A DNA stretch of 64,000 bases from Anthoceros angustus (lineage: Eukaryota; Plantae; Anthocerotophyta), in NCBI GenBank assembly GCA_010909165.1, contig MU008202.1:124001-188000 (forward strand). The letters run 5' to 3'. The notes below the pieces were generated by a model that ran no database searches, was not told where the DNA came from, and saw only the letters and a program-made list of their open reading frames with translations. This document shows positions 961 to 39,415 of this stretch, one piece after another (position 1 is the stretch's first letter; each line of letters opens with the position of its first letter). The position numbers and the translations under genes were made by a program.

Positions 961-2936
961 AATTTAATTAATTATAGCAACTATCAAAATTTTAAAAAAT
1001 ATTGAAATGAGTGACGAAAACTAAAATATGCAAATGGTAAGAGCCGAAAACATGCTGGTGTGCACATACCTCGGTTGTGAGGAGCAAGAGAGTGCACATC
1101 TCGGCCCAAGGAGGGGGAGAGTGCACTCCTCCGCCACTGAGATCCAATCTCCCGGTAGCACAGCAAGATTGGATTCAATTCTTCGAGGGGTCCTGGAATC
1201 TTGTGCAGCTAAAGCCTATGTTGCAGTATATTCTACACCTCTACTTAGGTACCCATCTATTTCATTTGGTATTGAAACCTAGGTTATGAGCCAGTCTTAA
1301 AAGGCTAAGATTAGGTAAATAGATAAAAAAAATTATAATATTTATTCATTATCTTTTCTATTCATTTATAAGTTATGATGTATTATAAAATTATATAGGA
1401 AGATATATTATTCTATATATTTAATATACTATTGAAATATAAAACATCAATGTATATTTTGTTAAAAACTAAAATTATAAACTCATACAAGTTGAATTTA
1501 TTTTTTCAAAAAACTAATTATTTGACATTAGGGTGTCCAAACCGGTGGCTCTTCGGTAATGTGTAAGATGAAAAAAATTTTACAAAATTTAGAGACTTAA
1601 TAAATATTTCAAAGTATACATTCAAGTCCCGAGGTTTTTTATGAAGAATGCCCAGCACACGGGAGACGAGGGCATGATGTTTGCGGCCATGAAGCGAGGG
1701 GATGAGTGATAACCCATCCAAACATTGATCAGTCCCAAGGACGCTGAAGTTCCGATGAACTCATGGAGTTCTAATATACTCATGTTTGGATGTAAAAACA
1801 TGAACAAAACTTGCTAGAACACTAGCATCCCAACAACATGACAACATACGGCAAATGTTGTAAGGCCAAGTCTTCCTCACCAAATTTCAATCATTCAAAA
1901 CTGTAAGGGTTGAAGAACAACGCGAGAATGAAAGTACGGGAGGGAAGATGACAAATCTTAATGGATTTAGAAGCACCTGTAGTTTGAAAATGGGCGATTG
2001 CGAGAGCTAGTCCCAACACGGTATCTTTCGAAGGGGGTGAATATTCACGAAGGGGGTTTTGTGAAATTTATCTCCTGAAGGGGGTTTCACATGGGTATTG
2101 AACTCGTGGTTTTGAGGTATGGGTGAATGTAAGGCAAAAAAGAAGGGTGAGAATTCATGTGAACCAGTGATACAAGGTCCATTTCAGGCCAGCGAAGGGT
2201 TATGGTGCAAGAGGTAACCTTATTTGGGGTGCATTTAAGACCCATGACAAGGGCCATTGCTGTCGGTCACTGCCGGTCTTTCTCGTACAACAACCCTAAA
2301 GACTCGTAAAAAGCACGGTGATCAGAATTGGATGACATGTTAACCTCCTGACAGTCGGGGAGCAAAGCAGGTCTGAGGAGAAGGGCACCGGCCGGCCGGC
2401 GCCCTTTTCCTGGCATTACGATGATGCCTTGCGAAAGGCGGAGAGTAGCAGGCCCATAGTGGGATGTGTGTACCAAAAGACTTTGGGTGTGGGGTGGGTA
2501 GGTAGCTTCTGCACACCCTCAATTGTGCCCGCAAATATAATCACATGGTTCAGTCCCACAGAGTGCAATCGATGAACGAAAAAAAGTGTGCGACAACCGG
2601 TTCTCGCCGACATATCGCACAGTAAAACATGCCCGCAAGGCTCATCGTGTGTTGCCTGTTGGTATGCCGCAATGGCAAGCGCGCAACTACCGCCACACTC
2701 CCCACATGTCCTTCCGCATGTAATGGAAAAAGGCTTGAACATTGGAAGCTATTAAGCATGTGAAGTCTACAACGGCACACAGAGAACAACCAAAACCAAA
2801 ATCCTATCATGGGCCTAGATTCTTTCCATAAATATGTACTGCGCTTGGAAATGTGCACTCCGAACTACAGGAATTGATCTTCACGCATAACCTCACCAAT
2901 TGCCCGTCGAAGATGACCTAACATTCATAGGGTTTC

Positions 2937-3150
2937 CTACTCTTCGCCAGACTCCATGCCATCATCTTCGTTGGGCACGGCATCATGACCATCATCTTCA
3001 CTGTCCTCGGTGGCACTTTGGCTCGCTGGTTGAATAAAGCCTCGCAATTCAATTTACTTATCCTTGATTGCCTTCTTATCTACAGCGTACAAATGTTTCC
3101 GCCATCAAGTTGAACTCATAATAGAGGATGACCGTTTGGTGAACAAAAAC
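2937..3150 (-). pseudogene. Element gene A, C-terminal remnant
   Basis: Translates as EVFVHQTVILYYEFNL / RKHLYAVDKKAIKDK*IELRGFIQPASQSA..E*, with one frameshift and one stop. Homologous to 16400-16632 in copy 2. Confidence 0.75.
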
Positions 3151-3863
3151 CTCTACTTACACGACAGTCTATTTCTACGCCTCAAAGTAATGCTATGCTT
3201 CACGTTTGGTGCACGAACATGCCCATATATTCTTCGAGAACGAAGCTACACATAGCATAGTATGAATGAATGAATGAAAACAGGTCCATAGGTGTTTTGG
3301 AAAATGCGTGCAACCATGGCATGAGAGGAGTTTCAATATACGCATCCATAAAGAGAACGGGCCGACGCCTTCCCCAACAAGCCTTGTACAGGGCGCCTTG
3401 CCAAGCTCCCCATGGGCGCAGGCCGGCCGGCGCTCTCCCCATGCATGTTCTCCTCATGGGCTGCCATTGATAAAATAGATAATTAGTGCTTCACACCTTG
3501 TTTGAGGGATAGTTAGTCAAGTGGTTTGTAAACAGTTTGAAAATCAATAGGATAGTTACTCAAGTGGTTTATAAATAGTTTAATAATCAATAGGTTGTGG
3601 GTTCAAATTCTCAAGAGGCTTAATAAACCAACTTTGTTGATTTTATGGGCGCATGGGCACGGGCATTTAAGGGCGCTAGCATGCCCATATATTGAGGCTG
3701 ACTTGATCCATGGGTATGAGGTTTTGCCACATGCTGACGAAGGATTGACATTCGAGGCCCACCGCAGAGGATTTGCGCAATTCTGGGCAAAGGAGGTGTG
3801 TGAGGACTCTTTGAAAGTGCAGGTGGTTTCTTTCAATACTCGTTGGCTGAGGACCAAAATTGG

Positions 3864-4010
3864 GGAGGACTGAACGAAGACTCAGAGGCTTTGGGCGAGA
3901 ACGATGGCTTCGATGAACGGGAACTGGAGCGGATTCGAAATTTGGTCATCATGATGGATTTGGAGTTCGCTCGAGCACCCGACGAGTCACACGTTAGCCA
4001 TAGAAAGTAG
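3864..4010 (+). pseudogene. Element gene B, C-terminal remnant
   Basis: NEDSEALGENDGFDERELERIRNLVIMMD aligns without gaps to NEYEQALEENDSFDAEDMDRLRNLAVVLD at 14082-14217 (-), 14/29 identical. Confidence 0.7.
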
Positions 4011-4706
4011 GCTTACGGTTCTGTAGGCACCTAGATGTGCCTCTTCTCTGTGTTCGTAATAACTTTTGGACCCGTTGCATTGAGGCAATTGATGATTTCA
4101 TTTTCCCCTCTTCCTCAAAAACGAAGCAAAGGCGCCGGTCGGCCGGCGCCTTTGCTTGGATTTGTTGTCTTTGTGTGTTGGAAACGGATTTTCATGATAA
4201 CTACTCGTTGGAAAACGGTCGACCTTTCTTGAAAACGAGGTAAAACGCATCTTTCGGGACTGTCGGGAATGTGCTAAGACGGTTTCCATGTCACAAAAGG
4301 GGGTTTGGATATTCACCCCCTTCGAAAGATACCGTGTTTCCCCTTTGGCCTAATGCCTCCTTGAGGGTTGGGGCCATTGCGGGGAGCTAGTCCCCTTGGC
4401 CCTGTGCCTCCTTGAGGGTTATTCCCCTTGAGTATAGATAATTTTCTCATCCCTTTTCACTACATAAAGTCTCCGTTAGTAACGGTATTGGTGAAATAAG
4501 GTAGAAAGGTGAAAAATTAAAAGAGGTAAAAAGCTAGTTTATTAGCTGCCCTGTTAAGAAGATGCATGTGTTGCTTGCTTCATGCAATCTCCTATTAGAG
4601 AGGAATTGCTAAAGCCACAAATGAAGAGCTACCTAGAGAGGACTCTTGTTGATCAGTGGTCTGTAAGAATCCCTAGATTTAACAGCTGCCTAGTTGAGGT
4701 CATGGC

Positions 4707-5219
4707 GGGATATATAAGGGCTAGAGCAAAGGCTTCTTAGGCCAGGTTGCAGGATATATTAGGGCTAGAGCAAGGGCTTCTCAGGTCAGGTTGTGGGATA
4801 TATAAGGGCTAGAGCAAGGGCTTCTCAGGTCAGGTTGTGGGATATATAAGGGCTAGAGCAAGGGCTTCTCAGATAAAGTTGCGGGATATATAAGGGCTAG
4901 AACAAGGGCTTCTCAGGTCAGGTTGCGGGATATATAAGGGCTAGAGCAAAGGCTTCTCAGGTCAGGTTGCAGGATATATTAGGGCTAGAGCAAGGGCTTC
5001 TCAGTTCAGGTTGTGGGATATATAAGGGCTAGAGCAAGGGCTTCTCAGATCAAGTTGCGGGATATATAAGGGCTAGAGCAAGGGCTTCTCAGGTCAGGTT
5101 GCGGGATATATAAGGGCTAGAGCAAGGGCTTCTCAGGTCAGGTTGCGGGATATATAAGGGCTAGAGCGAGGGCTTCTCAGGTCAGGTTGCGGGATATATA
5201 AGGGCTAGAGTAAGGGCTT
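4707..5219 (+). repeat. 44-bp tandem array, ~12 copies (GGGATATATAAGGGCTAGAGCAAGGGCTTCTCAGGTCAGGTTGC)
   Basis: Unit starts at 4707, 4751 ... 5191. Each unit carries TATATAA. Confidence 0.95.
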
Positions 5220-5290
5220 TGAGAAGGAGACACTCACTCTTTGAGAGAGCAGGCAAGTGTGCGCTGCAAGCCTTGTGTTGAGAGAGGTGT

Positions 5291-5390
5291 GGAGAGCTAG
5301 CTAGTGAGCTTGTCTGGAGAGCTAGCTAGTGAGCTTGTCTGGAGAGCTAGCTAGTGAGCTTGTCTGGAGAGCTGGCTAGTGAGCTTGTCT
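5291..5390 (+). repeat. 25-bp tandem array x4 (GGAGAGCTAGCTAGTGAGCTTGTCT)
   Basis: Units start at 5291, 5316, 5341 and 5366. Confidence 0.95.
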
Positions 5391-5837
5391 TGAGGTGCAA
5401 GGAGCTGGGCGTAGATAGCCGTGCTGGGCGAGATAGCCGAGCTGGGCGATAGCCGTGAGCTGGATGCAATAGCCAATAGCTAGTTAAGCGTAGATAGCCA
5501 GATTCCATCGTTGTTTTCTTTTAATAAAGAGCAGCACCTCGAGGAGGTGGCCTGCGTCAGTGGACGGCGGGCTACTTGGAGCCTAGTGCTGTGTTGTGAG
5601 GTTGAGAGCGCTGAGAATCGTGCAAGTCTCTTGTGGAGTGAATTGGCGAGGTCCTAGACCGCTAGGAAGCCAGCATTTGTCGCTTCCTTACTGGCTGCGC
5701 AGTGAGGGGTGTTACTTCGTTAGCTTTACTGGCTGCGCAGTGAGGGGTGTTACTCTGTTGGCTTTAGAAGCTACGGCGAAGTTTTTGGATATGGAATTGT
5801 CACGGTAGGCCGGCGTTTAGGTAATACAACATTGCTC

Positions 5838-6025
5838 AGATAATACAAGATAGCTTAGATAATACAAGATAGCTTAGATAATACAAGATAGCTTAGATAA
5901 TACAAGATAGCTTAGATAATACAAGATAGCTTAGATATTACAAGATAGCTTAGATAATACAAGATAGCTTAGATAATACAAGATAGCTTAGATAATACAA
6001 GATAGCTTAGATAATACAAGATAGC
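5838..6025 (+). repeat. 19-bp tandem array x10 (AGATAATACAAGATAGCTT)
   Basis: Near-perfect units from 5838 to 6009+, with no spacers. Confidence 0.95.
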
Positions 6026-6756
6026 GGGCCCGTGAACGAAGGCACACATGGAAGAAAGAGGTGAGGGGACAAGAGAGTACAATAAAGATACATAACGATC
6101 TTCATGGGGTTAACCCTAAAGGACGAACCTCCTCAACTTGAGTGGTTTTAAGTGCGTCATTCGGGATGTTTTCTACATCGATTCATCATCTTGGACCTCT
6201 CAGCATATGTGCCTAGCAAATTGGGGATATGATAGGAGTTCTCGGTGAGCGGGTGCGCCATGTAGGAGATAGTTTGTATAAGGTGTCCGAGATCCGCCAG
6301 AGGGCGAGGCTGAGGCCGAGGCCGAGGTCGTGGCAAAGGACCAGTACCCACACACTCTGACAATCCTATTGAACATATTTTCATTGGAGAAAGTTCATCT
6401 ACTCAAACACCTGCAAGAGGTAACAGCAAGAGTGGACGAATTTGCGGTCACTTCCCGAGTCCGACGGGATCTGCTCCTCCACGGATTTAGGGGTACCTGG
6501 ATTCCAAAAGGAATCCCGGTTTATAAGAGCCCTGTCTAGTCCCTTTGGTCGCAAATTGTGTGTATGGCACCAATTGATTTCTAATGTGCATAGTGTGCTC
6601 AACATAACTTGTTCTTGGTATCATTCTCATCGCTTGTCTGCAGTAGGGCAGGCGAGACGTAGAGAGGTGAGGTGTTTGTCTTTCCGGCATATTTGTTGCC
6701 GTTGTCATGGCCTGCAGCTGCTCGGAGCATCTAACATGTGGGGTCTTTGTCCTTAG

Positions 6757-8222: not shown

Positions 8223-11200
8223 CTAAAGAATAACAGGCGCATCCGCTGGGCACAAGTCCAAGTTGCGTAAAACGATCTTCGCAAAAACTTTAGCCTGCAC
8301 TTGGGCACTTGCGGCTGCGGCAGCAGACCGCAAAACCCGCGCTGCCCCTGCCTTGTGCAGAAGGCTTGCATGATGCATTGCATGACGCCCTCCCGGCATT
8401 GTGAACTACAGCAAACACGATCAAGCACTCAGTTCTACGAGACCGTCACATACCTTCTTCACGTTCTTTGTACCCAGAAGACAAAATCGAGCATAGAACC
8501 GGTAAGGTAAGCCTGTCTACCACGAAGTTGAAAATCATTACCTGAAGAAGAGCAAATGCGGCACAAGCCCGGAGAACAGGTGAGCAGTTCCGAAGCATAG
8601 TAACAAACCTCCCCACCTCAGCTCCACTGAATGTAACAAGATCAGCTGTTAGCACAGTTCCTTGTACCATTCTGAATACAGAAGAACACCGCAGCAAGGA
8701 AGTCCATATACTACCTGCACCGCAGGTGGCCAGCCTCTGTTATGCGTGCTGAGTCGGCCACCTGGTGAAGGAGCGCAGGTGTCCAAGAAGAAGCAGCCAG
8801 GGCAAGAGAAGCCGTGTCGGAAAATGCCTGGACGAAAATTTCAATGTGCTTGAGAGCCATTTTCCTTGCTGCTTCGAGACCTCCATTTCAGTGAATGCTT
8901 CACAGTGGGCACCAGCGGAGACCACTTCATCCATTCTGCTAAAACAAATCAGACATTAACACCCTCCACAGACACAAGATACACAACCTGAGACTCAGGA
9001 CGACATTTCCTGAGTTTCCAATTCTGGAGGACGTGGAAACAATTGCCACGTCCTCCAAAACATGTCGTCCTCCAGAAACTGACGAAGCCAGACTGCGAAA
9101 AGCAACGAACCTTCCATCAAACATATATGCCAGAGCAAGGGCTGCCATAAACCGTGCCATTTTTGACCCAGAATTGGAACAAAGGTGGACTAATGCAGGT
9201 ACACCATCTTCCTCCACCATGCGCAAAGCATTCCCTGCGTTGAAGGCTAGATTCCACAATGCACCAGCCGCGGTTTCATGAACATCCTGAAAGAGGGGAA
9301 GACCGAAACAGACGTTTCAGTCCAATCCTTGATCCCATCATTTCCAGTGTGGCTACAGTCACAAGATGATTCATTTGACCTCTGCAACAAACCTGTTGCC
9401 CTCATGGTGCAATATGGGATCTTACCTCAGAATCTGACCGTGCCAGGGCAATAAGAGGTGCCACGCCACCTTCCGTCCAATTGCAATGCTGAAAACCCAG
9501 AAAATTCATTGTTTCACCAGATGCAGGCATGTCCTCGTCAACATGAAAGCTTTCAGGAACCTACAAGGGCTTGAGAGAAGGCCAAGCATGATGCAAGCTC
9601 GGACAAAAGGGTCATTCAATCTCACCTGTTGGCTTCAGATACTGAGAGACCCCAAAGAGCTCCTGCTGCCCTCTCTTGCAATCCCTGAGAGCCATTACTA
9701 CAGCTTTGAGCCAAAGCCACCTGTACCAACCAAGACAACCTTCACATTTTAGTTGATCTTAACACAGGGTTCCACAGCACAGCGACAGAGTCTGAACAAA
9801 GGACTTCACTTTGACTACACTGGCTACTAGCACTTCATATGGACATTACCAATGCTTCCACTCCCCAGCAGCCGCAATTGCCTCACGGTTTCTGTCGTCA
9901 AAGAAAGATTCCACAGAGCTCCTGCAGCCTCCTGCCTGCAATCCACATAAAAGCGGAAGAGAGAATCAGTGTCTACATGGACAATATCAACTGAAGCGAT
10001 TGCCAGTCATTCAAAACTCCCTCACGGCCACTTACGGACACCTTCATGATGTGAGCAGGTAAGCTGCACAAGTGCATCAAGAGCCCCGTCCTCCCGGCCT
10101 ACAGCAGCATTATTTCCGTTACTGTCACCATGTGCTGCTAGATTAGCTAGTGCACGAGCTGCCTGTGTTCAATAATAACAAGTCTCTGTCAGCCCAAGTG
10201 TGCAAATGAAATCTGAGGCATTGCACAGACACCACTACCTATCAAGGATGATTGTAGCTTGGATTGGCACAATGACTTTACCTGTTCTTGGACACCTTCA
10301 TTCTTGCAAAATCGAGCAAGCATTACAAGTGCATGAACACCACCAGCCATAGCTACTTCCATGCTGCATTTATCATCTGCAGCAAGATTCGCCAAAAGCT
10401 CCAGCAGCACGTTCCTGAGATAGGAACAACTGTGCTTAGTTCCTACTCCAACGAACTTCCAACTGCACCCTTGGGAAGAAAAGGCAAAAAGAAAGAGTAC
10501 CAAGACTCCCTCCCGCCTGATGGCCACTTGAAAGCTAAGTCCACCAAAGCCTCGATAGCACCAGCCTCCGCTATGGCACCCTGAATTACATATGTGCATA
10601 CATGAGACAAACATGAGAATCAGATAGACGCCAACATACGAGCATCTAGGGAGCTCTTTTCAAAGGTATCCACCTCGATAATTACCTTATGCTCATCACC
10701 AACCGAAAGATTCCAAAGACCACCTGCAGCCTCCTCAGCTACCCAGCGATTGGGTGACCTGGCTAAGGCTGCTAATATACTGATGCCTCCCTCCATTGCA
10801 ACTGTCTTAGCCACTTCTGTGTTTACCGATAGGTTTGCTAGCGCCTGCAAGGAGCAAACGTATAAGAGAGGAATGCAAGACATCCAAGACATACAATGTT
10901 CCAGGAGCTGTGTGTCGTGAACCAACAAAAAGTACAATACCTTGGCTGCTTCTGACTGCACACCCTCACGGCTGGACTTGGCAAGGTTGAGAAGATAAGC
11001 GATGCCACCACCATTCATCACAGCTTCAGCTCTGTTCAGGTCAACTGTTGCATTTTCATCATCAATAACAACAAATGTGGCAAGCGCAGTTGCACCCCTT
11101 TCCTGCACTTCCTCCTGAGAGCTTTTCACAAGACTAAGCATCACAGCAGTGCCTTGCTTAAGCCAAAAGCTGTCCAGTCCTGGGAGATTACTTTCTGCTA

Positions 11201-12356
11201 TCCGCAATAAAGCATGAGACAACACCCACTCAATCCAGTCGCTCAGCTCCAGATTTTCTGGTCTTGCAAGCTCATGCTTTTCGACTTTCTCCAATCCAGA
11301 AAAGGGTTTTCCTCTTCACACCGCACACAGTCCTGCCGGATGCCTGGGATAGAGACTCAAACGAGAGTGAGGCCAGGCCCTTGACAAGATCCGTAAACCG
11401 GGCCAGCAGGATCTTGGTGTGAGAATTATAGGACACGTTGTCGCTGCCGTCCTCAAGCAGGGGACAATTAAGAGCGCAGAGGACCTTCAATTGCGGCGCT
11501 GCCAGAAACGCGGACGCAGCCGAGGGTGTAATCTCCGTCCGCGACACATCCACAGCCACCAGATTAGGCAGCTGCTTCGCCCAGAGCTGTGCTGCGCTGG
11601 CCCATGAGATGCTTCTGGATCCCGCCACGGACAACAACCGCAGACTGGTGGCGGTCCCCAGGGCACCCTCGTGGACTGAGCTGCAGTCAAGGAGACCCAA
11701 TTCGCTGAGGTCCGGGCACCCCTTCACCAGCGCCCCAATGGCCTCGGCGTCGACCTCCCTCACCCCCGACAGGCGCAGCCGCTTCAACTTGGGGCAGCAC
11801 AGGGCCACCACCTTGATCGCGTCGCTGGTGATTCTCTCGCAATCCGGCCCAAGCTGCAGGCTTTCCAGCGCGTCGTGCTTGGCAGCCAGCCACGAGAGGT
11901 GGGCATCCGACAGGTCCCTGCATGCGTCCCGCACAGTTCCCGTAACTCTCTGGCCTGCAGCGAGACGATGACCCCGGTTGCAGCGCCCCGGAACCTCAGC
12001 CGCTCCAACTTGGCACATCTCCCAGAAAGAGCCGATGCCATAGCCATATCCAGCGAATGCGCACGGAGATCCAGCGACGTCCACAGACACGGGGACGATG
12101 CCAACCGCCTCCATGCCCGGCACACCGACGCCAAACTGGACCTGTCTCTGTAATTTAGTAAACCGAATAATTGAATGAGCGCATCATCGGGCAGGCTGGT
12201 CCACTCCGCGTCGTATTGCCCTCCCACGCACACAATTTCCTCCTCCTCCTCCTGCGCAGCTTCGTACACCGCCTCCAGCGGCCTCTCGGGAGCCCTCTTG
12301 CTGGCCGTCGGCTTCACCGATATTTTGATTGCCTTCCGGCGCACTCTGCGAATCAT
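8223..12356 (-). CDS. ARABIDILLO: ARABIDILLO-like F-box / LRR / armadillo-repeat protein, multi-exon (copy 1, complete 5' and 3' ends)
   Basis: N-terminal MIRRVRRK; F-box WTSLPDDALIQLFGLLNYRDRSSLASVC; LRR region; ARM repeats (EEAAGGLWNLSV, ANLAADDKCSMEV, ARFMAALALAYMFDGR); last exon FTMPGGRHAMHH..AKIVLRNL with stop at 8223-8225. At least five 1-bp indels lie in short runs and are in frame in copy 2, so they are probably consensus errors. Confidence 0.85.
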
Positions 12357-13199
12357 GGCTCCCGCCTGGCAGCTGCCACACTGAATTAGCCCCCAAACCT
12401 AGGCTCCACCACCTCCCTCAAGGCGCCTCCAGCCCGGGCACGGGAGCCACAGCCACAGCCTCGAGAGCGCCCCTCCCACGGCAGCCACAGCCACAGCAAG
12501 ATCCCGGACTAAGGCGCCCCGACCCCGGCCCCGGCCCCGGCCTCGGCCTCGGCCTGCGACAGCAAATGCGAATTCGGCCCTGCCGGACCCCAATTTGCCC
12601 CAGCCCCTCCGTCCAACATAGTCGCAGCTCACGGAAGCCCTCCCTGGCATACATAACCCGGATTCAAGATGTCTCTACATATCTCCACCATGGCCAATTC
12701 CGGCATGTGCCATTCGCCATGCTGCCATCACAATTATGCGCTGCCCGCTGTTGCTGCTCGCCCGCCTTTCATCGGCCTGCAAGCCACCGGAATGCAATAT
12801 CATCTTTCACCACGCCGCTGCATCACATCCGTCGCATACCAGCCCGCCCCACCCCAACGCGACGCTCCCTGCGACTGAGCTCGAAAGATCGCGATACTAA
12901 TAGGGCTACCAACCAGGGCACACCTACGAAACCTCAATGCACTTATGCGACCCCGCCTCCTAGACGAACTCTACCTAATTAACATAACACCATGCATACC
13001 ATCCTACGCTATCGTTATTCTTTTATAAAAGAATATCCCGCATTATTTTTCCAAGGCAGCCGATTTCAACAACTTTTTTCTCCTCCTCCAACCGTCCCAC
13101 ACTCTTGAAGGCAATGGGACGATGGCTCTTTCCTTGCTAATTCTCCCAAACATTGTTTGCCTTGATTTAGTTCGACTCTTTCTCTCTTCCAGCTTGATC

Positions 13200-13685
13200 A
13201 TATCTCCTAGTATTTTCCACGCCGGTGAAGACTATGAATTGGGGTTCTCATCTATGCTACGTACTCTAGCCTTCATGAGTATTGTTCATGCCAGGTCTCC
13301 AAGTTCTCTTCGCCTGTTCAGTCATGCTACACATTATAGCCACCATGAACATTCTTCCTACCAACTCTTCTAATACTCTCTTCATGAATGTTGTTCATGC
13401 AAGTTTTCTTCGGCTTTTCGTACATGCTACATATTGTGGCTACCATAAATAATATTCCTGCCAACTCTCTCTGTACTCTTGGAGAAGGTGAAGACTATGC
13501 ATCAGGGTGTGGCTACCATAAATAATGTTCCTGCCAACTCTCTTAGTACTCTGTGAGCATGAGCAGGTGAAGACTGTGCATCAGGTTTTCGTACATGTTA
13601 CATATCGCGGTCACTATGAATATGATTTCTACCAAGACCCTTTGGAAGACAATGGACAAGTGTTGCTGGAGCGAAGGCGATGAAG
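13200..13685 (+). repeat. Degenerate ~70-100 bp repeats (GGTGAAGACTATG / GGCTACCATAAATAATGTTCCTGCCAACTCTC), block X
   Basis: The motifs recur several times between 13220 and 13600. The segment 13438-13685 plus 17037-17068 is copied at 31092-31368. Confidence 0.75.
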
Positions 13686-14081
13686 AACATGATAATTTTT
13701 GAAGGGGGGGAATATAGTAAGCTCCTTCGGTCGAAACAACACCCCCTTGTCACAGTTTACACCCTTCCTACGATAGCATATCTGCCAAGCTTTGATAATC
13801 GGCACACCCTTTATGAGTCCATACCTTTGATAAAAGACACACTTTCAATTCTACACCCCAGAACTAGAGCACTGTAGGGCGTGGGCCCGTGTGCATTTTT
13901 GTAGAATGCACAGTGGGCTGCTATTTGCATCTGTTTATTACTGCTGAAAACGTTTACTTTTCAAGTGGTGGAACACGATAAAAATCATGCTTCTACTTGC
14001 GAGAGTCTCCTTTCAGTATTCGTGAAAACCTTGCAATAAACAATTGCTAAAGGAGGAAGTGGTCATCAGCATCAACAATAG

Positions 14082-14217
14082 TCATTCAAGAGGGCGGCCT
14101 AGCAACTTGTCCATGCCTTGCGCCGATGCTGAGTCAAGGACCACTGCCAAATTCCGAAGGCGGTCCATATCCTCGGCGTCAAAGCTGTCATTCTCCTCCA
14201 ATGCTTGCTCGTATTCA
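14082..14217 (-). pseudogene. Element gene B, C-terminal remnant
   Basis: NEYEQALEENDSFDAEDMDRLRNLAVVLDSASAQGMDKLLGRPLE*, homologous to 3864-4010. Confidence 0.7.
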
Positions 14218-14581
14218 TTAGTCTAATTCTTGGGCTGAGCTTACAACGGTGCTGACTGCCATATAACATTTAGGATCTGCTGACCTTCATCTAATAGCTC
14301 GCTAGTCGTGGTCTTCAACCTTCTGGCACTCAATGCAACCACTTGGACTTTAAGGCAATGCCAGCGTCCTTAAAATGAACAAAGTTGGTTAACCATGCGC
14401 CCATGCCCGAGTCCTTAAAATCAATAAGTTGTTTTGTGATGCTAGTAGAGGTTTTGTACTCAAAACCTATTAATTACCGCACTTTTTCTTCAACTACTTG
14501 AGCAACTACCCCAAATTACATGCATCTTGAACCGCTAACTATTTATTTTAACCAAGATAGCCTATGAGGAGGACAGCTATG

Positions 14582-14770
14582 GGGAGGGCGTCGGCCGGCC
14601 GGCGCCATGGGAAGGGAGAGCATCTTTGGGGAGGCGTCGGCCGGCGCCATGGGCGTGGGCGTCTTTGCGGGAGGGCGCCGGCCGGCATGCGGGCGTCTTT
14701 GCGGGGAGGCCTCGGCCGGCGCCATGGGCGTGGGCGTCTTTGCGGGAGGGCGCCGGCCGGCATAGGCCGC
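14582..14770 (+). repeat. GC-rich GGCCGGCCGGCGCC / GGGCGTCTTTGCGGG repeat core of element copy 2
   Basis: Several nested copies. Related motifs occur at ~2385, 3360-3440 and 4130 in element copy 1. Confidence 0.85.
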
Positions 14771-14811
14771 TAGCACCACCCGTCGGTGCATGCGGTGGAG
14801 CTAGGGGAGGG

Positions 14812-16632
14812 GACAAGAAGAGGCAGCGGTATCCTATCACCGACGAAGGTGTGGCCCATTTGCGGGAAGGGTTAAAAGATTTGCGTCCATAGGTGACTCA
14901 AGAGTACAAGTGGTGGGAAGCCTTTTGGTGGACCAAGGAGATTCTTGTCATTGTGGAGAAAACATCGAGCTAGTGCTAGAGCGCCCTTGGAAGTGGTTTT
15001 CACGTGCGTAAGTGGATCATACCACCACTTCAAGTCTTGGATGACGCTTTCTTTGGATGAGGCATTATTGAGAGACCTCCACAGCGTGATATGTACTTGG
15101 GAGCATATCAAAATGCGAAGGCAACAGCGGGAAATGACACGGATGAATGAGGACATAACCAATCCGGAAGGGATGTTCTGGCGGTGCCGTGCACTCACCA
15201 TAACAGTCATTCGGATTGGGAAGGTCATTGACTGAAGCTAAATGCACCACGACCTCACTTTCTTATCCACTAGTATCGGACCGAGCACATTACCCAAAAT
15301 GCATACAAGAGGTATTTGTGAATGAACAAATATCCCAGACATGGGTTTGTATTGAGCGACGGAAACATTTGTATGCGGTGGACAAAAAGCGGTAAGGGAT
15401 AAGCTTTTGCAGTTGCGCGGACTTCATGACGAGTCAAAGTGCCGTTGAAAATTGCGACAATCTTTGGAGAAGCTGGACCAAGGAGATTGTCATTGTGGAG
15501 AAAAACATCGAGCTAGTGCTAGAGCGTCCTTGGAAGTGGTTTTCACGTGCAGAAGTGGATCATACAGCCCGACCACTTCAAGTGCCGGATGACGCTTTGC
15601 TGGATGAGGCATTATTGAGAGACCTCCCACAGCGTGATATGTACTTGGGAGCATATCAAAATGCGAGAAGGCAACAGCGGGAAATGACACGGATGAATGA
15701 GGACATAACCGAAATCCGGAAGGGGATGTTTCTGGCAGTGCCGTGCACTACAGACACGCATAACAGGTCATTCTGGATTGGGAAGGTCATTGACGCGAAG
15801 CTAAATGCACCACGACCTCACTTTCTTATCCACTAGTATCGGACCGAGCACATTACCCAAAATGCATACAAGAGGTATTTGTGAATGAAACAGTCATCCT
15901 GTATTATGGGTTTGTATTGAACGTACGGAAACATTTGTATGCGGTGGACAAAAAGCGGTAAGGGATAAGCTTTTGCAGTTGCGCGGACTTCATGACGAGT
16001 CAAAGTGCCGTTGAAAATTGCGACAATCTTTGGAGAAGCTGGACCAAGGAGATTGTCATTGTGGAGAAAACATCGAGCTAGTGCTAGAGCGCCCTTGGAA
16101 GTGGTTTTCACGTGCGTAAGTGGATCATACCACCACTTCAAGTCTTGGATGACGCTTTCTTGGATGAGGCATTATTGAGACCTCCCACGCCGTGATATGT
16201 ACTTGGGAGCATATCAAAATGCGAAGGCAATGGAAATGACACGGATGAATGAGGACATAACCGAATCCGGAAGGGATGTTTCGGCGGTCTGCGCACTACG
16301 TATAACGACACCGTGTCATTCGGATTGGGAAGGTCATTGACGCGTGCTAAATGCACCACGACCTCACTTTCTTATCCACTAGTATCGGCATTACTACCCC
16401 AAAATGCATACAAGAGGTATTTGTGAATGAAACAGCCATCCTGTATCATGGGTTTGTATTGAACGTACGGAAACATTTGTATGCGGTGGACAAAAAAGCG
16501 GTAAGGGATAAGCTTTGCGAGTTGCGCGGCTTCATACAGCCTACGAGTCAAAGTGCCGTTGAAAATTGTGACGACAATGCTGGAGAAGCTGGACCAAGTG
16601 ATGACGAAGGATTGAACTATGGGGATGAGTAA
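14812..16632 (+). pseudogene. Element gene A 3' part, internally triplicated (~550-bp unit) and frameshifted
   Basis: DKKRQRYPITDEGVAHLREGLKDLRP*..WWEAF; IRKGMFLAVPCTTDTHNRSFWIGKVIDAKLNAPRPHFLIH*Y; EVFVNETAILYHGFVLNVRKHLYAVDKKAVRDKLCELRGFIQP..GDE*. Unit starts (GGACCAAG) at 14930, 15475, 16041 and 16591. Confidence 0.75.
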
Positions 16633-17320
16633 AACTCAAATCACAGTTTGTCCCGAGGTCCCAGAGTGAATGTTGTACGTTCGGTTCCAGATGTTACCGT
16701 GTTTTGGAAGTATCATGTCCGTGGCTTTTGTTGTGTCCTTACTAAACCATTTTCCTTCCAAAACTGAATTTACGGTCATCCCTTCCCGGCAAAAACGGCC
16801 TTCCTTACAGGTCCCACTTTGCATTAATCCCATAGGTTCGAGTTTGCGACCACCATTCGACAGAAACATTGCTGGTTGGAAAGTAGTAATTTTACTGGGT
16901 CACACCCTTTTTTTCCAAGATGTTTTCCGGAATGACTAATAAACGCTGTTTTAGGGCCCATCAAAAACCCCCTTCAGAGATTATGTATGGAAAACCCCCA
17001 TCGAGATTATTCACCCCCTTCAAAAATTATGGTGTTGAAGATAGTTGTAGTGTATTCCTACATGGATTTTATGTGTATGGAAACTAGATTAGGATAGGTA
17101 GTTTATTTTAATATAATATATTTGTTTCATCGAAATCTGGATCTCTTTTAGGTGCGGTATTGCTTAGAGCGAAAAAGCTCTTACCAAACCATGTAGCTGA
17201 ATATGTATGACTACCTACATAGCACCGGGTGAGTCGAAGTTGTTGGTAGCATTGCAAATGTGTGTTTGGATTCATGTCCCAAAGTGCGACCCCACCTCCT
17301 AGACATCTGGAGGCAGACAT

Positions 17321-17514
17321 TGTGAACTTTCCTAATGTATAGAAAATAGCGGAAGCATGAATTAGAAAAGATTAGAAAATTCATAGGTTAGGGGCCCTTT
17401 TATAGGGGACCCGGGCACCCCTTCGTAGGGGCTGCGATCGTCGCTAACGAGCTAGGTTAGCCTAACTCGCCTCGACTATTGGCTAGGGTTATGTAACTCT
17501 TACTAAACTTAACA
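17321..17514 (-). repeat. 3' LTR of the Copia-derived element
   Basis: TG..CA termini, adjacent to the PPT, nearly identical to 20751-20937. Confidence 0.92.
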
Positions 17515-20750: not shown

Positions 20751-20937
20751 TGTGAACTTTCCTAATGTATAGAAAATAGCGGAAGCATGAATTAGAAAAG
20801 ATTAGAAAATTCATAGGTTAGGGGCCCTTTTATAGGGGACCCGGGCACCCTTCAGAGGGTCGATCGCTTAACGAGCTAGGTTAGCCTAACTCGCCTGACT
20901 ATTGGCTAGGGTTATGTAACTCTTACTAAACTTAACA
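20751..20937 (-). repeat. 5' LTR of the Copia-derived element
   Basis: TG..CA termini, adjacent to the tRNA-iMet PBS. Confidence 0.92.
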
Positions 20938-24046: not shown

Positions 24047-27000
24047 ATGGGACCCAAGAAAGCGGGAGGTGTGGGAGCCATGGAGCTTGGTGGAGCGCAA
24101 CATCGTCACCAGGCGCTATCCGGACTTCGGGCCGTGGCTGGAGGAGGCGGGGAGCTGGTCAAGGAGTGGCACCGGACGCTTCCAGTCAGATGGACTGGCC
24201 AGCCTAGTCCGGAGTACGCCAAGATGTTGGCAGCGCCAACAAGGAGGTTCTCTAAGAGCCTTGAGAGGACCCTAGGAGGTGGACCGTGAGGTCCCGAGGC
24301 GGTACAACCGCCGGAGGAAATTGGGGGCGAGTCCCGAACCTCTCAAGGCTAGGGAAGATAGGCGGCAAAGGCCGCCCGCCGAAGCTGTGAACGCAACGAA
24401 CAACCAACGGCCGGTTGATGCCTGACGGCCGGAGGAGGAGGCGTGATCATTGTCCACTGGAACATGCTCACCAAGGTAGATCACCTTGGTGACAATCTGC
24501 TGGTGTTCCTGCATGCGCTGCAGAGAGGAAGGAGGGCAGACTGGGGAAGGATCATCTTCGCCAGGATCAATCAGGAGGCTCACAAGCTGAGGTGTGAGAA
24601 GCCCCCTCCGTCGGCGTTATCGCCGTTCTTAATTCATGTGTGGGGGCACGCGAACCTCCTGAAGGAAGGAGAAGAGGAACGCGACCGGAAGGGGCCGCCG
24701 CCTACCGGAGGCGGGAAGAACCTGAGGTGGAAGCCCGCCCGTCCGAGCAAGAGAGCGGGAGGAAGACGATCGAGGGAATCCACCCATACGCTTGAGCGGA
24801 CTCCCTCGCCACCAAGGGAAGTGTGGGAGGACATCCCCGCTTCCTCCTCCCCGGTGCCCCCACCGAGCAAGAGAGGAGGCGGCCGTGGAGGTCCGAGAGC
24901 CCAGCCCGACAGACCCCACCCACGGCAAGCACGAGCCGACGGACTGCCGGGACCAAGAGGCGGAAGACGGTGCCACCCGCCAACGCAGCACCGGACGGCG
25001 CCCGTGCCCTTGCCCCTGCCAACGGAGTGGCAAGAAGCTGAAGAGGCGGTGAGAAGGGCGGAAAGGGACGCCGCCCAAGGAGCGGGAGGCCACTGGCAGC
25101 AGCCCCACCCGGAGCCGGTCCTGTCTCCGACGGGGAGAGGCAAGAGGGTCAGCTCCCGAACCCCCTCACCCCCTCCGAGCCCCAGGAGAAAGAGGGCGAA
25201 CAAGGAATTGGCGGCCAAGAGGGCCAAAGAAGGTGAGGCTGGACGACTGTGACCTAAGGGTCCCGATTAGGTCCGAGAGCCCAGCCCGACTCGCCTCCGG
25301 ATCAAGGTATGGAGGTCCTTGGCGGACCGAGAGATGCCCGCCCCCACAACGGACTTCTTGGGGGCCTCACTGCGCGCCTGTGGAAGAGACACGGCGGGTC
25401 ACAGCTACCGTCATGGACGGTATGCTGGGTCTGCGGGATGGCCGAGAAGACCTGTGGAGGTGGAGGCCACAAGGAGGCGCATGGTGCTCCTCCAGAGCAG
25501 ATGGAGGCGCCTGTGAGGCGAGGAAGAAGGCGGAAGCCCTCGGCCGCATCGAGGAGGGCCGGAGGAGGCGGGGAGTTGGTCAAGGAGTGGCACCGGACGC
25601 TTCCAGTCAGATGGACCTTCGGCTGCCTAGTCCGGAGTACGCCAAGATGTTGGCAGCGCCAACAAGGAGGTTCGCTCTAAGAGCCTCGAGAGGACCCTAG
25701 GAGGTGGACCGTGAGGTCCCGAGGCGGTGTACAATCGGCCGGAGGAAATTAGCGAGTCCCGAACCTCTCAAGGCTAGGGAAGATAGAGGCGGCAAAGGCC
25801 GCCGCCGAACGCAACGAACAACCAACGGCCGGTTGATGCCTGACTTGGCCGGAGGAGGAGGAGAGGCAAAGGGCTGTGATCATTGTCCATCGAACATGCT
25901 CACCAAGGTAGATCACCTTGGTGACAATCGGTGTTCCCGCATGCGCCGCAGAGGAAGGAGGCGACTAGGGAAGGATCATCTTCGCCAGATCAATCGTGAG
26001 GCTCACAAGCCGAGGTGAGAAGCCCCTCCGCTTGCCATATCGCCGTTCTTAATTCATGTGTGGGGCACGCGAACCTCCCAAGGAAGGAGAAGAGGAACGA
26101 CCGGGCCGCCTACCGGAGAAGGAAGAACCTGAGGTGGAGGCCCGTCCGAGCAAGAGAGCTGGAGGAAGACGATCGAGGGAATCCTGACTCCATACGCTTG
26201 AGCGGACTCCCTCGCCACCAAGGGAAGTGTGGGAGGACATCCCCGCTTCCTCCTCCCCGGTGCCCCCACCGAGCAAGCAGGAGGAGGCGGATGGGCGGCC
26301 GAGGCGGCCCAGCCTGACAAATCCACCACGGCGCCAAAGCCCGACGACCTCGGGACCAAGAGGTGGAAGACGTGCCACCCGCCAACGCAGCACCGGACGG
26401 CGCCGTGCCCTTGCCCCGCCAACGAGTGGCAAGAAGTCAAGAGGGCGAGAAGGGCGAAAGGGACGCCCAAGGAGCGGGAGGCCACCGCGCAGCCCCACCG
26501 AGCCTGCCTCCGACGGGAGAGGCAAGAGGGTTAGCTCCTCAACCCCTCACCCCTCCGAGCCCTGTGAGAAAGAGGGCAACAAGGAATTGGCGCCAAGAGG
26601 GCCAAAGAAGGTGAGGCTCCGACTCGGACTGGACCTAAGGGTCCCGATTAGGTCCGAGAGCCCAGCCCGACTCGCCCGGCCGCGGTATGGAGGTCCTGGC
26701 GACCGAGATGCCCGCCCACAACGGACTTTGGGGGCCTCACTCACTGTGGAAGAGACACGGTCCTGCCACTATGGACAGATGCCTGGGGTCTCGCGGATGG
26801 CCGAGAAGACCTGTGGAGGTGGAGGCCACAAGGAGGCGCATGGTGCTCCTCCGTGAGCGATGGAGGCGCCTGTGAGGCGAGGAAGAAGGAAGCCCTCGGC
26901 CGCATCGAGGAAGCGCCGGAGGCGAGGGAAGTCCGTCCATTCGACAGATCGACTAAGTTTCTTCACCGTGAGGTGGAGGAGGCAGTGGGAGGCCCAAGCA

Positions 27001-31091: not shown

Positions 31092-31368
31092 AGGCTACTA
31101 TAAATAATGTTCCTGCCAACTCTCTGTGTTTCCTTGTAGAAGGTGAAGATTATGCATCAGGGTGTGGCTACCATAAATAATGTTCCTGCCAACTCTCTTA
31201 GTACTCTCTGAGCGTGAGCGGGTGAAGACTATGCATAAGGTTTTCGTACATGGTACATATCGCGGCCACTATGAATATGATTTCTACCAAGACCCTTTGG
31301 AAGACAATGGACAAGTGTTGCTGGAGCGAAGGCGATGAAGATAGTTCTAGTGTATTCCTGCATGGATT
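31092..31368 (+). repeat. Second copy of block X, lacking the TIR element (empty site)
   Basis: Matches 13438-13685 joined directly to 17037-17068 through a single GAAG. Confidence 0.9.
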
Positions 31369-31370
31369 AT

Positions 31371-32049
31371 AGTTGATAGAAACACGTTGATGCTAACCTT
31401 GAAGGGCAGGGGGACAAAAGAGGACAAACTCAGGTTGGCAATTGTGGATCTGCTCTCCATGGAAGCGACACCACCTGCAGACGTTGAAGCTATAGAGTCT
31501 GTTCTTCGGGAGGAGCAGATAGACGTTGCAGCATTTGTTTACGTCAAGCGAATAAAGTCCTTGAATTTGAACCTCCCTCCTGCAAATGCAGCAAATGCTG
31601 CAAGTAAAGAAAATCTCCTGGATTGGGCTGACAAACTCTATGGGCAAACCCTTAGCTCAGTGGCGGCAGTAGCTGCTCAGGGAGTTAAGAATCTACTTGC
31701 AGGAGGGAGGCAGCTGGCTGTCCCAAGGGCCGTGGAGTCTCTGATGGATTCCAAATCTCCAGACACAGAGGCGTATTTGACTTTTGATCCTAGAAGCCCC
31801 AAGGGGGCAGCGGTAGGTGATGGCCTATCCAAAGGGCCTTTCAAAGAAGCCATTGTGTTCATGATCGGTGGCGGTAACTATGTCGAGTATGGAAGCATCC
31901 AAGAACTTGCACAAAGACGACAGCCAGCTAAGAACATCATATATGGCGCTACAGAGATTTTGACAGGAAAAGATTTTGTTGATCAGCTGACACAGCTAGG
32001 AAGTGGCATGAACCGCAATGCCAGTGCAAACCTTACAACCACAAATTAG
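31371..32049 (+). pseudogene. SLY1: Duplicated 3' third of SLY1
   Basis: Colinear with 38338-39016. Open frame from ATG 31390 (219 aa) with several amino-acid changes (Y>D, G>E, S>A, G>D, F>L, Q>R). The 5' two-thirds are missing. Confidence 0.9.
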
Positions 32050-32449
32050 AATCCACCTCATTGGCGATGGACTGGAGGTCCCGTCGCAACTAGTGCACAT
32101 CGTGTTTTTAGTTTCAGACATTTGTAGCTCTTTGAATCTGCATAGGTACATTGTTGCTCTAGGTTCGAGCATCAGAGCTTTTTTCTATTGATAAAATTCC
32201 AAAGAAGCTTTGAGCCTTTACAGGTTCAATTCTCACATTCGCTTGGCGGGCTACTGTTTAAAGAGTTGGGCGCTGGCTTAGGTTCCTTTCAAGTGCTGCA
32301 ACTGTGGACCTATGTCTGTGTGCTCTACAGAAGCAAAACTTGCTGCTCTCCACAAGCAAAACTTGAAGCAAGACACTGGAATCTCCCGCCGTCTCCGGCT
32401 TTGTTCCATGACTGATATATTCTGTCATCGCACGGAATGCACCAGCAGA

Positions 32450-33007
32450 CTATGCCAGAAACTTCTTCAACGCGGAGACATCCAGTGCAGGGAACTGCTC
32501 AACAATGCTCAGCACTGCAGAGCCCAGTTTCCTAGCAGCTTCTTGAGACGGTGCCTGTCATCCAATATCACCAATATCATCCAATATCCAATCCCATTGA
32601 CAGTTGCTACGCACAACATCCAATGTCGGAATTTACTTACTTCAATGTTCAATGGAAGAAGGGATCATGGAGGGACACTCTAAGCAAAAACCAGCCGCCG
32701 TACCCAGAAACGCGGACCTACGAACAGAACGAATGCTTCGAGTTCACCGAATCCGTGTGGTAACCACGAGTCTTAGTTTGTGCTCAACCTTAATTAGCAA
32801 ACAAAGGCTGGGAGTCAGCCATACCCCTTCATAATTCACAGCAGCCTTAGTGCTATCAGTCGATTGCGGTTTATCTCACGTCCATCTGAATCTATCGCAG
32901 CAGCCCTGGAAGAAATGCTTTTAATTATTCTTGTGCTTACACTCTAGAAACTCATCCCTACAGCAAGAATACAAAAGTCCGATTCAGCTTACCTGTCCAC
33001 ATCAGTG
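32450..33007 (-). pseudogene. Duplicated fragments of the PGM/PMM-like gene (last exons plus one internal piece)
   Basis: 32450-32848 matches 39416-39810 and 32849-33007 matches 40795-40953, joined across a 984-bp deletion. Confidence 0.88.
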
Positions 33008-36000
33008 CGGCACAAAACCGGAGAACAAGTGAGCAGTTCCGAAGCATAGTAACAAACTTCCCCACCTCAGCTCTGCTGAATGTAAAAAGATCAGCTGTTA
33101 GCACAGTTCCTTGTACCATTCTGAATACAGAAGAACACCGCAGCAAGGAAGTCCATATAATACCTGCACCGCAGGTGGCCAGCCTCTGTTATGCGTGCTG
33201 AGTCGGCCACCTGGTGAAGGAGCGCAGGTGTCCAAGAAGAAGCAGCCAGGGCAAGAGAAGCCGTGTCGGAAAATGCCTGGACGAAAATTTCAATGTGCTT
33301 GAGAGCCATTTTCCTTGCTGCTTCGAGACCTCCATTTCGAGTGAATGCTTCACAGTGGGCACCAGCGGAGACCACTTCATCCATTCTGCTAAAACAAATC
33401 AGACATTAACACCCTCCACAGACACAAGATACACAACCTGAGACTCAGGACGACATTTCCTGAGTTTCCAATTCTGGAGGACGTGGAAACAATTGCCACG
33501 TCCTCCAAAACATGTCGTCCGCCAGAAACTGACTAAGCCAGACCGCGAAAAGCAACGAACCTTCCATCAAGACAATATGCCAGAGCAAGGGCCGCCATAA
33601 ACCGTGCCATTTTTGACCCAGAATTGGAACAAAGGTGGACTAACGCAGGTACACCATCTTCCTCCACATGCGCAAAGCATTCCCTGCGTTGAAGGCTAGA
33701 TTCCACAATGCACCAGCCGCGGTTTCATGAACATCCTGAAAGAGAGGAAGACCGAAACAGACGTTTCAGTCCAATCCTTGATCCCATCATTTCCAGTGTG
33801 GCTACAGTCACAAGATGATTCATTTGACCTCTGCAACAAACCTGTTGCCCTCATGGTGCAATATGGGATCTTACCTCAGAATCTGACCGTGCCAGGGCAA
33901 TAAGAGGTGCCACGCCACCTTCCCGTCCAATTGCAATGCTGAAAACCCAGAAAATTCATTGTTTCACCAGATGCAGGCATGTCCTCGTCAACATGAAAGC
34001 TTTCAGGAACCTACAAGGGCTTGAGAGAAGGCCAAGCATGATGCAAGCTCGGACAAAAGGGTCATTCAATCTCACCTGTTGGCTTCAGATACTGAGAGAC
34101 CCCAAAGAGCTCCTGCTGCCCTCTCTTGCAATCCCTGAGAGCCATTACTACAGCTTTGAGCCAAAGCCACCTGTACCAACCAAGACAACCTTCACATTTT
34201 AGTTGATCTTAACACAGGGGTTCCACAGCACAGCGACAGAGTCTGAACAAAGGACTTCACTTTGACTACACTGGCTACTAGCACTTCATATGGACATTAC
34301 CAATGCTTCCACTCCCCAGCAGCCGCAATTGCCTCACGGTTTCTGTCGTCAAAGAAAGATTCCACAGAGCTCCTGCAGCCTCCTGCCTGCAATCCACATA
34401 AAAGCGGCGGAAGAGAGAATCAGTGTCTACATGGACAATATCAACTGAAGCGATTGCCAGTCATTCAAAACTCCCTCACGGCCACTTACCGGACACCTTC
34501 ATGATGTGAGCAGGTAAGCTGCACAAGTGCATCAAGAGCCCCGTCCTCCCGGCCTACAGCAGCATTATTTCCGTTACTGTCACCATGTGCTGCTAGATTA
34601 GCTAGTGCACGAGCTGCCTGTGTTCAATAATAACAAGTCTCTGTCAGCCCAAGTGTGCAAATGAAATCTGAGGCATTGCACAGACACCACTACCTATCAA
34701 GGATGATTGTAGCTTGGATTGGCACAATGACTTTACCTGTTCTTGGACACCTTCATTCTTGCAAAATCGAGCAAGCATTACAAGTGCATGAACACCACCA
34801 GCCATAGCTACTTCCATGCTGCATTTATCATCTGCAGCAAGATTCATAAAAGCTCCAGCAGCACGTTCCTGAGATAGGAACAACTGTGCTTAGTTCCTAC
34901 TCCAACGAACTTCCAACTGCACCCTTGGGAAGAAAAGGCAAAAAGAAAGAGTACCAAGACTCCCTCCCGCCTGATGGCCACTTGAAAGCTAAGTCCACCA
35001 AAGCCTCGATAGCACCAGCCTCCGCTATGGCACCCTGAATTACATATGTGCATACATGAGACAAACATGAGAATCAGATAGACGCCAACATACGAGCATC
35101 TAGGGAGCTCTTTTCAAAGGTATCCACCTCGATAATTACCTTATGCTCATCACCAACCGAAAGATTCCAAAGACCACCTGCAGCCTCCTCAGCTACCCAG
35201 CGATTGGGTGACCTGGCTAAGGCTGCTAATATACTGATGCCTCCCTCCATTGCAACTGTCTTAGCCACTTCTGTGTTTACCGATAGGTTTGCTAGCGCCT
35301 GCAAGGAGCAAACGTATAAGAGAGGAATGCAAGACATCCAAGACATACAATGTTCCAGGAGCTGTGTGTCGTGAACCAACAAAAAGTACAATACCTTGGC
35401 TGCTTCTGACTGCACACCCTCACGGCTGGACTTGGCAAGGTTGAGAAGATAAGCGATGCCACCACCATTCATCACAGCTTCAGCTCTGTTCGGGTCAACT
35501 GTTGCATTTTCATCATCAATAACAACAAATGTGGCAAGCGCAGTTGCACCCCTTTCCTGCACTTCCTCCTGAGAGCTTTTCACAAGACTAAGCATCACAG
35601 CAGTGCCTTGCTTAAGCCAAAAGCTGTCCAGTCCTGGGAGATTACTTTCTGCTATCCGCAATAAAGCATGAGACAACACCCACTCAATCCAGTCGCTCAG
35701 CTCCAGATTTTTCTAGTCTTGCAAGCTCATGCTTTTCGACTTTCTCCAATCCAGAAAAGGGTTTTTCCTCTTCACACCGCACACAGTCCTGCCGGATGCC
35801 TGGGATAGAGACTCAAACGAGAGTGAGGCCAGGCCCTTGACAAGATCCGTAAACCGGGCCAGCAGGATCTTGGTGCGAGAATTATAGGACACGTTGTCGC
35901 TGCCGTCCTCAAGCAGGGGACAATTAAGAGCGCAGAGGACCTTCAATTGCGGCGCTGCCAGAAACGCGGACGCAGCCGAGGGTGTAATCTCCGTCCGCGA

Positions 36001-36807: not shown

Positions 36808-37016
36808 GGCTCCCGCCTGGCAGCTGCCACACTGAAGTGTTACATAACTTGACCTAGCTCTGCTTGGCCGAGTGAGCAGAAACAAGCAAGCAAAAAGAGA
36901 GCTGTTGCAGCTCAAGGCGATGCAATTTTGGCATACTGCACGGGGAAATGAAGCTCGTGGGGACGTAAGTGGCTTGGCGACCTTGATCGTGTGCCGACCT
37001 CGGTCTCCCGCGCAGC

Positions 37017-39016: not shown

Positions 39017-39415
39017 AATCCACCTCATTGGCGATGGACTGGAGGTCCCGTCGCAACTAGTTCACATCGTGTTTTTAGTTTCAGACATTTGTAGCTCTTT
39101 GAATCTGCATAGGTACATTGTTGCTCTAGGTTCGAGCATCAGAGCTTTTTTCTATCGATCAAAAGCCAAAGCAGCTTTGAGCCTTTACAGGTTCAATTCT
39201 CACATTCGCTTGGCGGGCTACCGTTTAAAGAGTTAGGCACTGGCTTAGGTTCCTTTCAATTGCTGCAACTGTGGACCTATGTCTGTGTGCTCTACAGAAG
39301 CAAACTTGCTGCTCTGCACAAGCAAAACTTGAAGCAAGATACTGGAATCTCCCGCAGTCTCCTGCTTTGTTCCATGACTGGTATATTCTGTCATCGCACG
39401 GAATGCACCAGCAGA

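Follow-up and report, generated by a model that had tools for sequence, protein, structure and literature searches.

Target-site duplications (TSDs) are 8 bp long in the hAT superfamily of DNA transposons and 3 bp long in CACTA and PIF. For other plant superfamilies with terminal inverted repeats (TIRs), the lengths on record are 7-12 bp for MULE, 2 bp for Tc1, 4 bp for Sola, 4 bp together with TG...CA ends for Ginger1 and 6 bp for GingerRoot (PMC10741241, PMC6839031). With hAT, CACTA and PIF taken at the values given above, Sola is the only plant TIR superfamily that combines a 4-bp TSD with ends other than TG...CA (PMC10741241, PMC6839031, PMC9804982). Sola elements are present in bryophytes, the host group here, and not in angiosperms; Sola1 has been recorded in the moss Physcomitrella (PMC9033089), and the TIR of the insect element Sola1_NA is published (PMC3845634). 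An AWWT target is described as a hallmark of Sola1 and has been reported for Sola2 as well (PMC3845634, PMC3627910). Here we describe a 3351-bp element, copy 2, in 64,000 nucleotides of the hornwort Anthoceros angustus (assembly GCA_010909165.1, contig MU008202.1, positions 124,001 to 188,000), the whole of which is called the window. Copy 2 is a real DNA transposon of class II (TIR, cut-and-paste) with well-defined bounds, and it is non-autonomous. Our best explanation of the locus as a whole, to which we give a probability of about 0.68, is that this non-autonomous element sits in a sequence named X1 and was moved there in trans by a transposase of the Sola superfamily.

Copy 2 is assigned to class II because it has inverted ends, a target duplication that can be compared with an unoccupied site, and a second copy in the window (copy 1) that shares its ends. 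From position 13686 the left end reads AACATGATAATTTTTGAAGGGGGGGAATA, and the reverse complement of positions 17008-17036 is AACACCATAATTTTTGAAGGGGGTGAATA, the two arms agreeing at 26 of 29 positions. Direct reading and a pattern search bore out the 29-bp TIRs and the GAAG duplication that the initial annotation had given for copy 2. A degenerate TIR pattern has only four matches in the window, namely both ends of copies 1 and 2, where shuffling leads one to expect 0.00-0.01. The TIR pairs of the two copies also take the top two places among inverted repeats within 6 kb across the whole window, and both elements have AACA...TGTT termini. When 13438-13685 is joined to 17041-17070, that is, when X1 is read without the element, it aligns colinearly to 31093-31370 (X2), with no gap at the junction and with 74 identical nt on its left side.

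Copy 1 has an empty site of its own, as a neighbouring satellite unit carries a single TCCC at 4391-4394. The two elements are collinear in inverted orientation over five blocks of ~66% identity (Table 1), and sequence comparison shows that they are of common ancestry; that copy 2 is inverted relative to copy 1 corrects an earlier description. Over all four ends 21 of the 29 TIR columns are invariant, which upholds the TIR skeleton previously said to be common to the copies. The collinear blocks, the same termini and the same motif layout likewise sustain the view that the two copies are related, copy 2 being the second and diverged member. The word "subfamilies" does not hold, as ~66% identity makes the two copies different families of one lineage under the 80% rule. 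In the surrounding DNA, a 44-bp satellite (4617-5307) and a 19-bp satellite (5779-6063) adjoin copy 1, which itself lies inside a related ~52-bp repeat.

The ends of the two copies share further structure. Exact GAAGGGGGT occurs six times in the 64-kb window, each time at an end of copy 1 or copy 2. The left end of copy 1 and the right end of copy 2 have three direct occurrences, ~16, 35 and 63 nt from the tip; at the opposite end of both copies, the occurrence within the TIR is followed by one in reverse orientation. Because this asymmetric layout has been kept amid sequence that is otherwise no more than two-thirds identical, it suggests that the subterminal motifs are binding sites of the mobilising transposase.

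Copy 2 is unable to move by itself, since it encodes no transposase. Its longest open reading frame (ORF) is 136 aa, eight internal ORFs from both copies contain no Pfam domain, and a transposase was found neither in copy 2 nor in the rest of the window. We propose that copy 2 would have been mobilised in trans by a Sola-superfamily DDD transposase, most likely of Sola1 type, encoded elsewhere in the genome. The enzyme would recognise the AACA...GAAGGGGG.GAATA termini together with the subterminal motifs and excise the element. Integration would then occur at a 4-nt staggered cut, the repair of which would produce the GAAG duplication.

Given a 4-bp TSD without TG...CA ends or a TTAA target, copy 2 is, among plant TIR superfamilies, probably a Sola-type non-autonomous element, most likely Sola1-like, with an atypical target. 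Like Sola1 and insect Sola1_NA, the hornwort copies combine 4-bp TSDs with TIRs of ~30 nt; their TIR sequence bears some resemblance to that of Sola1_NA (..AC.GT.T.TTT.GAA.G.GGTG.A..), and like Sola1_NA they are non-autonomous derivatives without a transposase. The insect TIR matches the copy 1 ends at 18-19 of 30 positions without gaps, in a post hoc comparison with one published sequence. That score was reached by 5-12 of 20000 shuffles and at 19 of 60000 random window positions (p ~3e-4 to 6e-4). The systems differ in their targets (AWWT versus TCCC and GAAG), in the first bases of the element (GGAC in Sola1_NA, AACA here) and in size: the insect MITEs (miniature transposable elements with inverted repeats) measure 0.2-0.7 kb, whereas the hornwort elements measure 2.3-3.4 kb and contain internal tandem arrays.

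Several points weigh against the Sola assignment. The call draws mainly on TSD length and end similarity, no transposase having been seen. At the ends of copy 2 the insect TIR matches 17 of 30 and 15 of 30 positions, the latter being weak, and the comparison was made post hoc with a single published sequence. Neither TCCC nor GAAG conforms to the AWWT target of Sola1 and Sola2, although there are only two insertions. A T precedes each GAAG of copy 2, so that a 5-bp TSD (TGAAG) is also possible from the copy 2 junction alone. Finally, searches of Pfam, the ESM Atlas, profiles, the PDB and metagenomes made no link between the 136-aa ORF and a transposase tail. As for TSD length, 4 bp is the sole value that fits both copies, since a 5-bp reading of copy 1 fails (GTCCC versus TTCCC).

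It is conceivable, if rather unlikely, that copy 2 is a real TIR transposon from outside Sola, such as Chapaev within CMC, Academ, Ginger1 or an undescribed AACA-ended lineage without an AT-rich target preference. The TSDs, which depart from AWWT, and the lack of a visible transposase would suit such an origin. So would a CAC that comes directly after the two outermost bases at three of the four ends and recalls CMC termini. Transib, with its 5-bp TSD, is ruled out by copy 1 even though copy 2 would permit TGAAG, and piggyBac and Kolobok, which target TTAA, are ruled out by TCCC and GAAG. Ginger1 ends in TG...CA (PMC6839031) and is excluded by the AACA...TGTT termini, while Chapaev and Academ are absent from superfamily lists for plants (PMC9804982, PMC10741241). 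The resemblance of the ends to the insect Sola1 TIR, which for copy 1 exceeds the chance level in the post hoc comparison, also argues for Sola. Written in common element orientation, the two TSDs are TCCC and CTTC, both all-pyrimidine (n = 2). The earlier statement that targeting is not sequence-specific stands in so far as the TSDs differ and no fixed tetranucleotide is used; with two insertions, both all-pyrimidine, a loose preference is possible.

The unoccupied site also bears on when copy 2 arrived. X1 is the 3' part of a local array of repeats that extends upstream past the X1/X2 homology boundary, whereas X2 begins abruptly in the middle of a unit. Judged from these sequences, X2 appears to be a short copy of the X1 region that arose by repair-type copying or a template switch at a time when X1 was unoccupied. 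As X2 is an unoccupied paralogue, the copy 2 insertion would be younger than the X2 copy, and the simplest order is that X was copied first and copy 2 inserted later. In our scheme, the 278-nt X copy would have been pasted at 31093 and copy 2 would then have entered X1. The only constraint on the date is that the X copies have diverged by 6-8% (Kimura two-parameter distance, K2P, ~0.06-0.08), which is no more than a loose upper limit on the age of the insertion. At an assumed angiosperm-type rate, this bound corresponds to roughly a few million years. The initial annotation had the insertion follow a duplication of block X and concluded that the family was mobile recently. The order is retained as the simplest one; recent mobility is overstated given 6-8% divergence, and the 3 mismatches in 29 TIR positions and the decayed interior of copy 2 are no sign of youth. 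The pre-insertion allele with one GAAG is confirmed as a colinear paralogue, except that the last ~13 nt of the reported match (31371-31383) belong to the next block, B, at a microhomology junction. X2 is thus a genuine unoccupied paralogue, yet it is a 278-nt fragment within a microhomology-joined patchwork of local copies and not part of a simple duplicated block.

It is very unlikely that the insertion is older than X2 and that the apparent empty site arose through precise loss, either by footprint-free excision or by a template switch across the two TGAAG repeats. The X-B, B-C and C-A junctions of the patchwork all have 2-12 nt of microhomology, which implies that templates were indeed switched at short repeats in this locus, and a 4-5-nt repeat for such a switch is present in the TSD itself. 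Even so, precise loss demands either a switch exactly at the TSD or an excision without a footprint, the latter being uncommon for cut-and-paste elements. The identity of the 74 nt by the junction and the ungapped alignment there also speak against loss, and insertion of copy 2 after the copying of X needs no extra event.

From its sequence, the interior of copy 2 appears to be what is left of a rare protein gene, a decayed fragment that was amplified in tandem. It would represent passenger sequence amplified in tandem, comprising a GC-rich minisatellite and three copies of the gene fragment. Both elements keep a GC-rich block around a GCCGGCCGGCGCC core (3406-3652 in copy 1, 14364-14614 in copy 2), and in copy 2 it has been expanded to the 34/41-nt minisatellite; an earlier suggestion made this block a bidirectional promoter. 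The 136-aa ORF lies in the second of three tandem units, ends within a conserved region and is matched in units 1 and 3 by frameshifted parts. HMMER, run exhaustively over 1.84 billion representative proteins, turned up two true relatives: P0002, with 374 aa (whole-library E-value 1e-5), and P0003, with 244 aa (2e-4); both are unnamed singletons from Logan assemblies. Two further matches are repeat proteins and look spurious. Comparison of P0002 with the window by tblastn gave 2e-11, and the conserved positions of the family are L..PW.W..R, R.MY.G, EI..G..A and FW..KV.

Other searches with this family added little. The ESM Atlas yielded weak leads only, DUF7869-bearing clusters at 0.83 and 0.75, which are below a meaningful level. 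A profile search of a word-indexed database returned nothing beyond P0002 itself, a PDB sequence search gave no match, and AlphaFold2, given a 3-row alignment, modelled P0002 with a pLDDT of 33.7. In metagenome contigs there were no TIR relatives, and a protein-based locus search gave 163 pattern matches, none of which was confirmed. Because the ORF family is nearly absent from public protein data, its gene was probably transposon-borne and fast-evolving rather than a captured or conserved host gene. Copy 2 resembles Pack-MULEs and the gene-fragment-carrying GingerRoot elements (PMC6839031) in holding a non-transposase protein-coding fragment. It differs from such Pack-type elements in that its fragment has almost no public relatives and is probably transposon-borne, and in TSD length and ends.

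An earlier "two-gene, head-to-head" idea, by which copy 2 would be more than a passenger and still carry working genes, could appeal to one ORF with true protein relatives and to three internal blocks kept between copies otherwise ~66% alike, one of them GC-rich and CpG-island-like, but it can hardly be right. With 136 aa the ORF is a fragment that breaks off within the conserved domain, and the other two units carry frameshifts. When the copies are compared by tblastx, several frames and both strands score equally well, which points to conservation at the DNA level, and copy 1 entirely lacks the P0002-like part. A more speculative proposal, which we consider doubtful, is that the AACA-ended elements with 4-bp TSDs in this genome form a land-plant (hornwort) branch within Sola, or else its sister lineage, and have exchanged AWWT for GC-containing, perhaps homopyrimidine, tetranucleotide targets. 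Its autonomous members would carry a P0002-like domain, of which copy 2 has one fragment in triplicate.

Table 1. Features of copy 2, of its relative copy 1, and of the X sites and patchwork (window positions unless marked as element coordinates).
Feature	Positions	Strand	Remarks
Copy 2, non-autonomous TIR element, 3351 bp	13686..17036	(-) relative to copy 1	TIRs, TSD, empty site, collinear inverted homology to copy 1
End-B TIR (AACATG...GAATA)	13686..13714	(+)	
End-A TIR	17008..17036	(-)	26/29 match to other arm
Left TSD, GAAG	13682..13685	(.)	Direct reading; single at empty site
Right TSD, GAAG	17037..17040	(.)	Direct reading
Two subterminal GAAGGGGGT / GATGGGGGT motifs	16967..17002	(-)	Direct orientation with TIR copy; same spacing in copy 1 (2049, 2077)
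End-B subterminal motif, inverted, CAAGGGGGT	13741..13749	(-)	Same arrangement in copy 1 at 4296-4304
GC-rich 34/41-nt minisatellite, GCCGGCCGGCGCC core	14594..14763	(.)	At edge of block common to copy 1
Three tandem ~550-bp units	14929..16598	(+)	Aligned positions 95.5-97% identical, many indels
136-aa ORF in unit 2	15426..15836	(+)	L..PW.W..R...R.MY.G...EI..G..A...FWI.KV; relatives P0002, P0003
Copy 1, 2324 bp	2015..4338	(+)	Perfect 30-nt TIRs; TSD TCCC at 2011-2014 and 4339-4342
Collinear block 1 (element coordinates)	Copy 1 1-138 = copy 2 3351-3215		
Collinear block 2 (element coordinates)	Copy 1 924-1140 = copy 2 2946-2728		Also matches two other tandem units
Collinear block 3 (element coordinates)	Copy 1 1392-1638 = copy 2 929-679		
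Collinear block 4 (element coordinates)	Copy 1 1854-1931 = copy 2 538-462		
Collinear block 5 (element coordinates)	Copy 1 2256-2324 = copy 2 69-1		
X1, left flank of copy 2 insertion	13438..13685	(+)	3' part of degenerate local array of 70-100-nt repeats (13230-13650)
X1, right flank of copy 2 insertion	17041..17070	(+)	
X2, unoccupied paralogue of copy 2 target; patchwork piece	31093..31370	(+)	278 nt; lone GAAG at 31337-31340; ~14 kb from copy 2; copy of X1 flanks minus element; junction to B1: ~12 nt imperfect microhomology
B1, patchwork piece	31371-32848		Copy of Sec1 3' part 38338-39810; junction to C1: GCAGCCTT, 976 bp skipped
C1, patchwork piece	32849-33007		Copy of 40795-40953; junction to A2: TG
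A2, patchwork piece	33006-36836		Copy of 8557-12385

The patchwork that begins with X2 spans 31093-36836 and consists of X2, B1, C1 and A2, joined at microhomologies of 2-12 nt. The K2P distances of its pieces from their local counterparts are 0.063-0.076 for X, 0.021-0.031 for B, 0.066 for C and 0.007 for A, and it looks more like the product of template switching or filler-DNA repair than like a simple segmental duplication. It holds a shortened copy of the 3' end of a Sec1 gene, and A2 is a near-identical second copy of an F-box/LRR/Arm gene (K2P 0.007). A reading of blocks A, B and C as a long terminal repeat (LTR) retrotransposon was rejected, as they are duplicates of host genes (the F-box/LRR/Arm gene and the Sec1 3' part). 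A hAT-like insertion as the difference between B1-C1 and B2-C2 was rejected as well, since the additional 976 bp resembles genic sequence that was lost at a microhomology.

The window as a whole is nuclear land-plant DNA, with a 922-aa gene for a PLS/E-type PPR protein, the F-box/LRR/Arm gene and fragments of a hybrid histidine kinase. The Sec1-family ORF at 37148-39016 is complete and intronless (622 aa, Pfam E 3e-121). Plant Sec1/SM genes do not usually look like this, and the ORF may be a retrocopy. An Rfam scan of the whole window gave no match. Among the other repeats, 27-nt inverted repeats that are 89% complementary and 338 nt apart in AT-rich DNA (27-418) mark a possible MITE. Just downstream of copy 2, direct repeats of 194 bp (17321-17514 and 20751-20937; 94.8% identical, 3.4 kb apart) could be short LTRs or another duplication. 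A 1.4-kb tandem duplication at 24136-26922 (86% identical) is set in DNA of 63-65% GC with long ORFs that have no Pfam match.

In most respects copy 2 is a matter of routine repeat annotation, being an ordinary 3.35-kb passenger transposon, most likely of the known Sola group. Together with copy 1, it offers a twice-verified example, by TIR, TSD and empty site, of a DNA transposon lineage with a 4-bp TSD in a non-seed plant. Few descriptions of Sola elements exist for non-seed plants, and repeat libraries centred on angiosperms do not contain them. With its exact ends and its subterminal GAAGGGGGT motif, the lineage has a signature that serves both for masking such elements and for locating their autonomous partner. 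Targets other than AWWT give a slight hint that Sola-like elements of plants may choose their targets differently.

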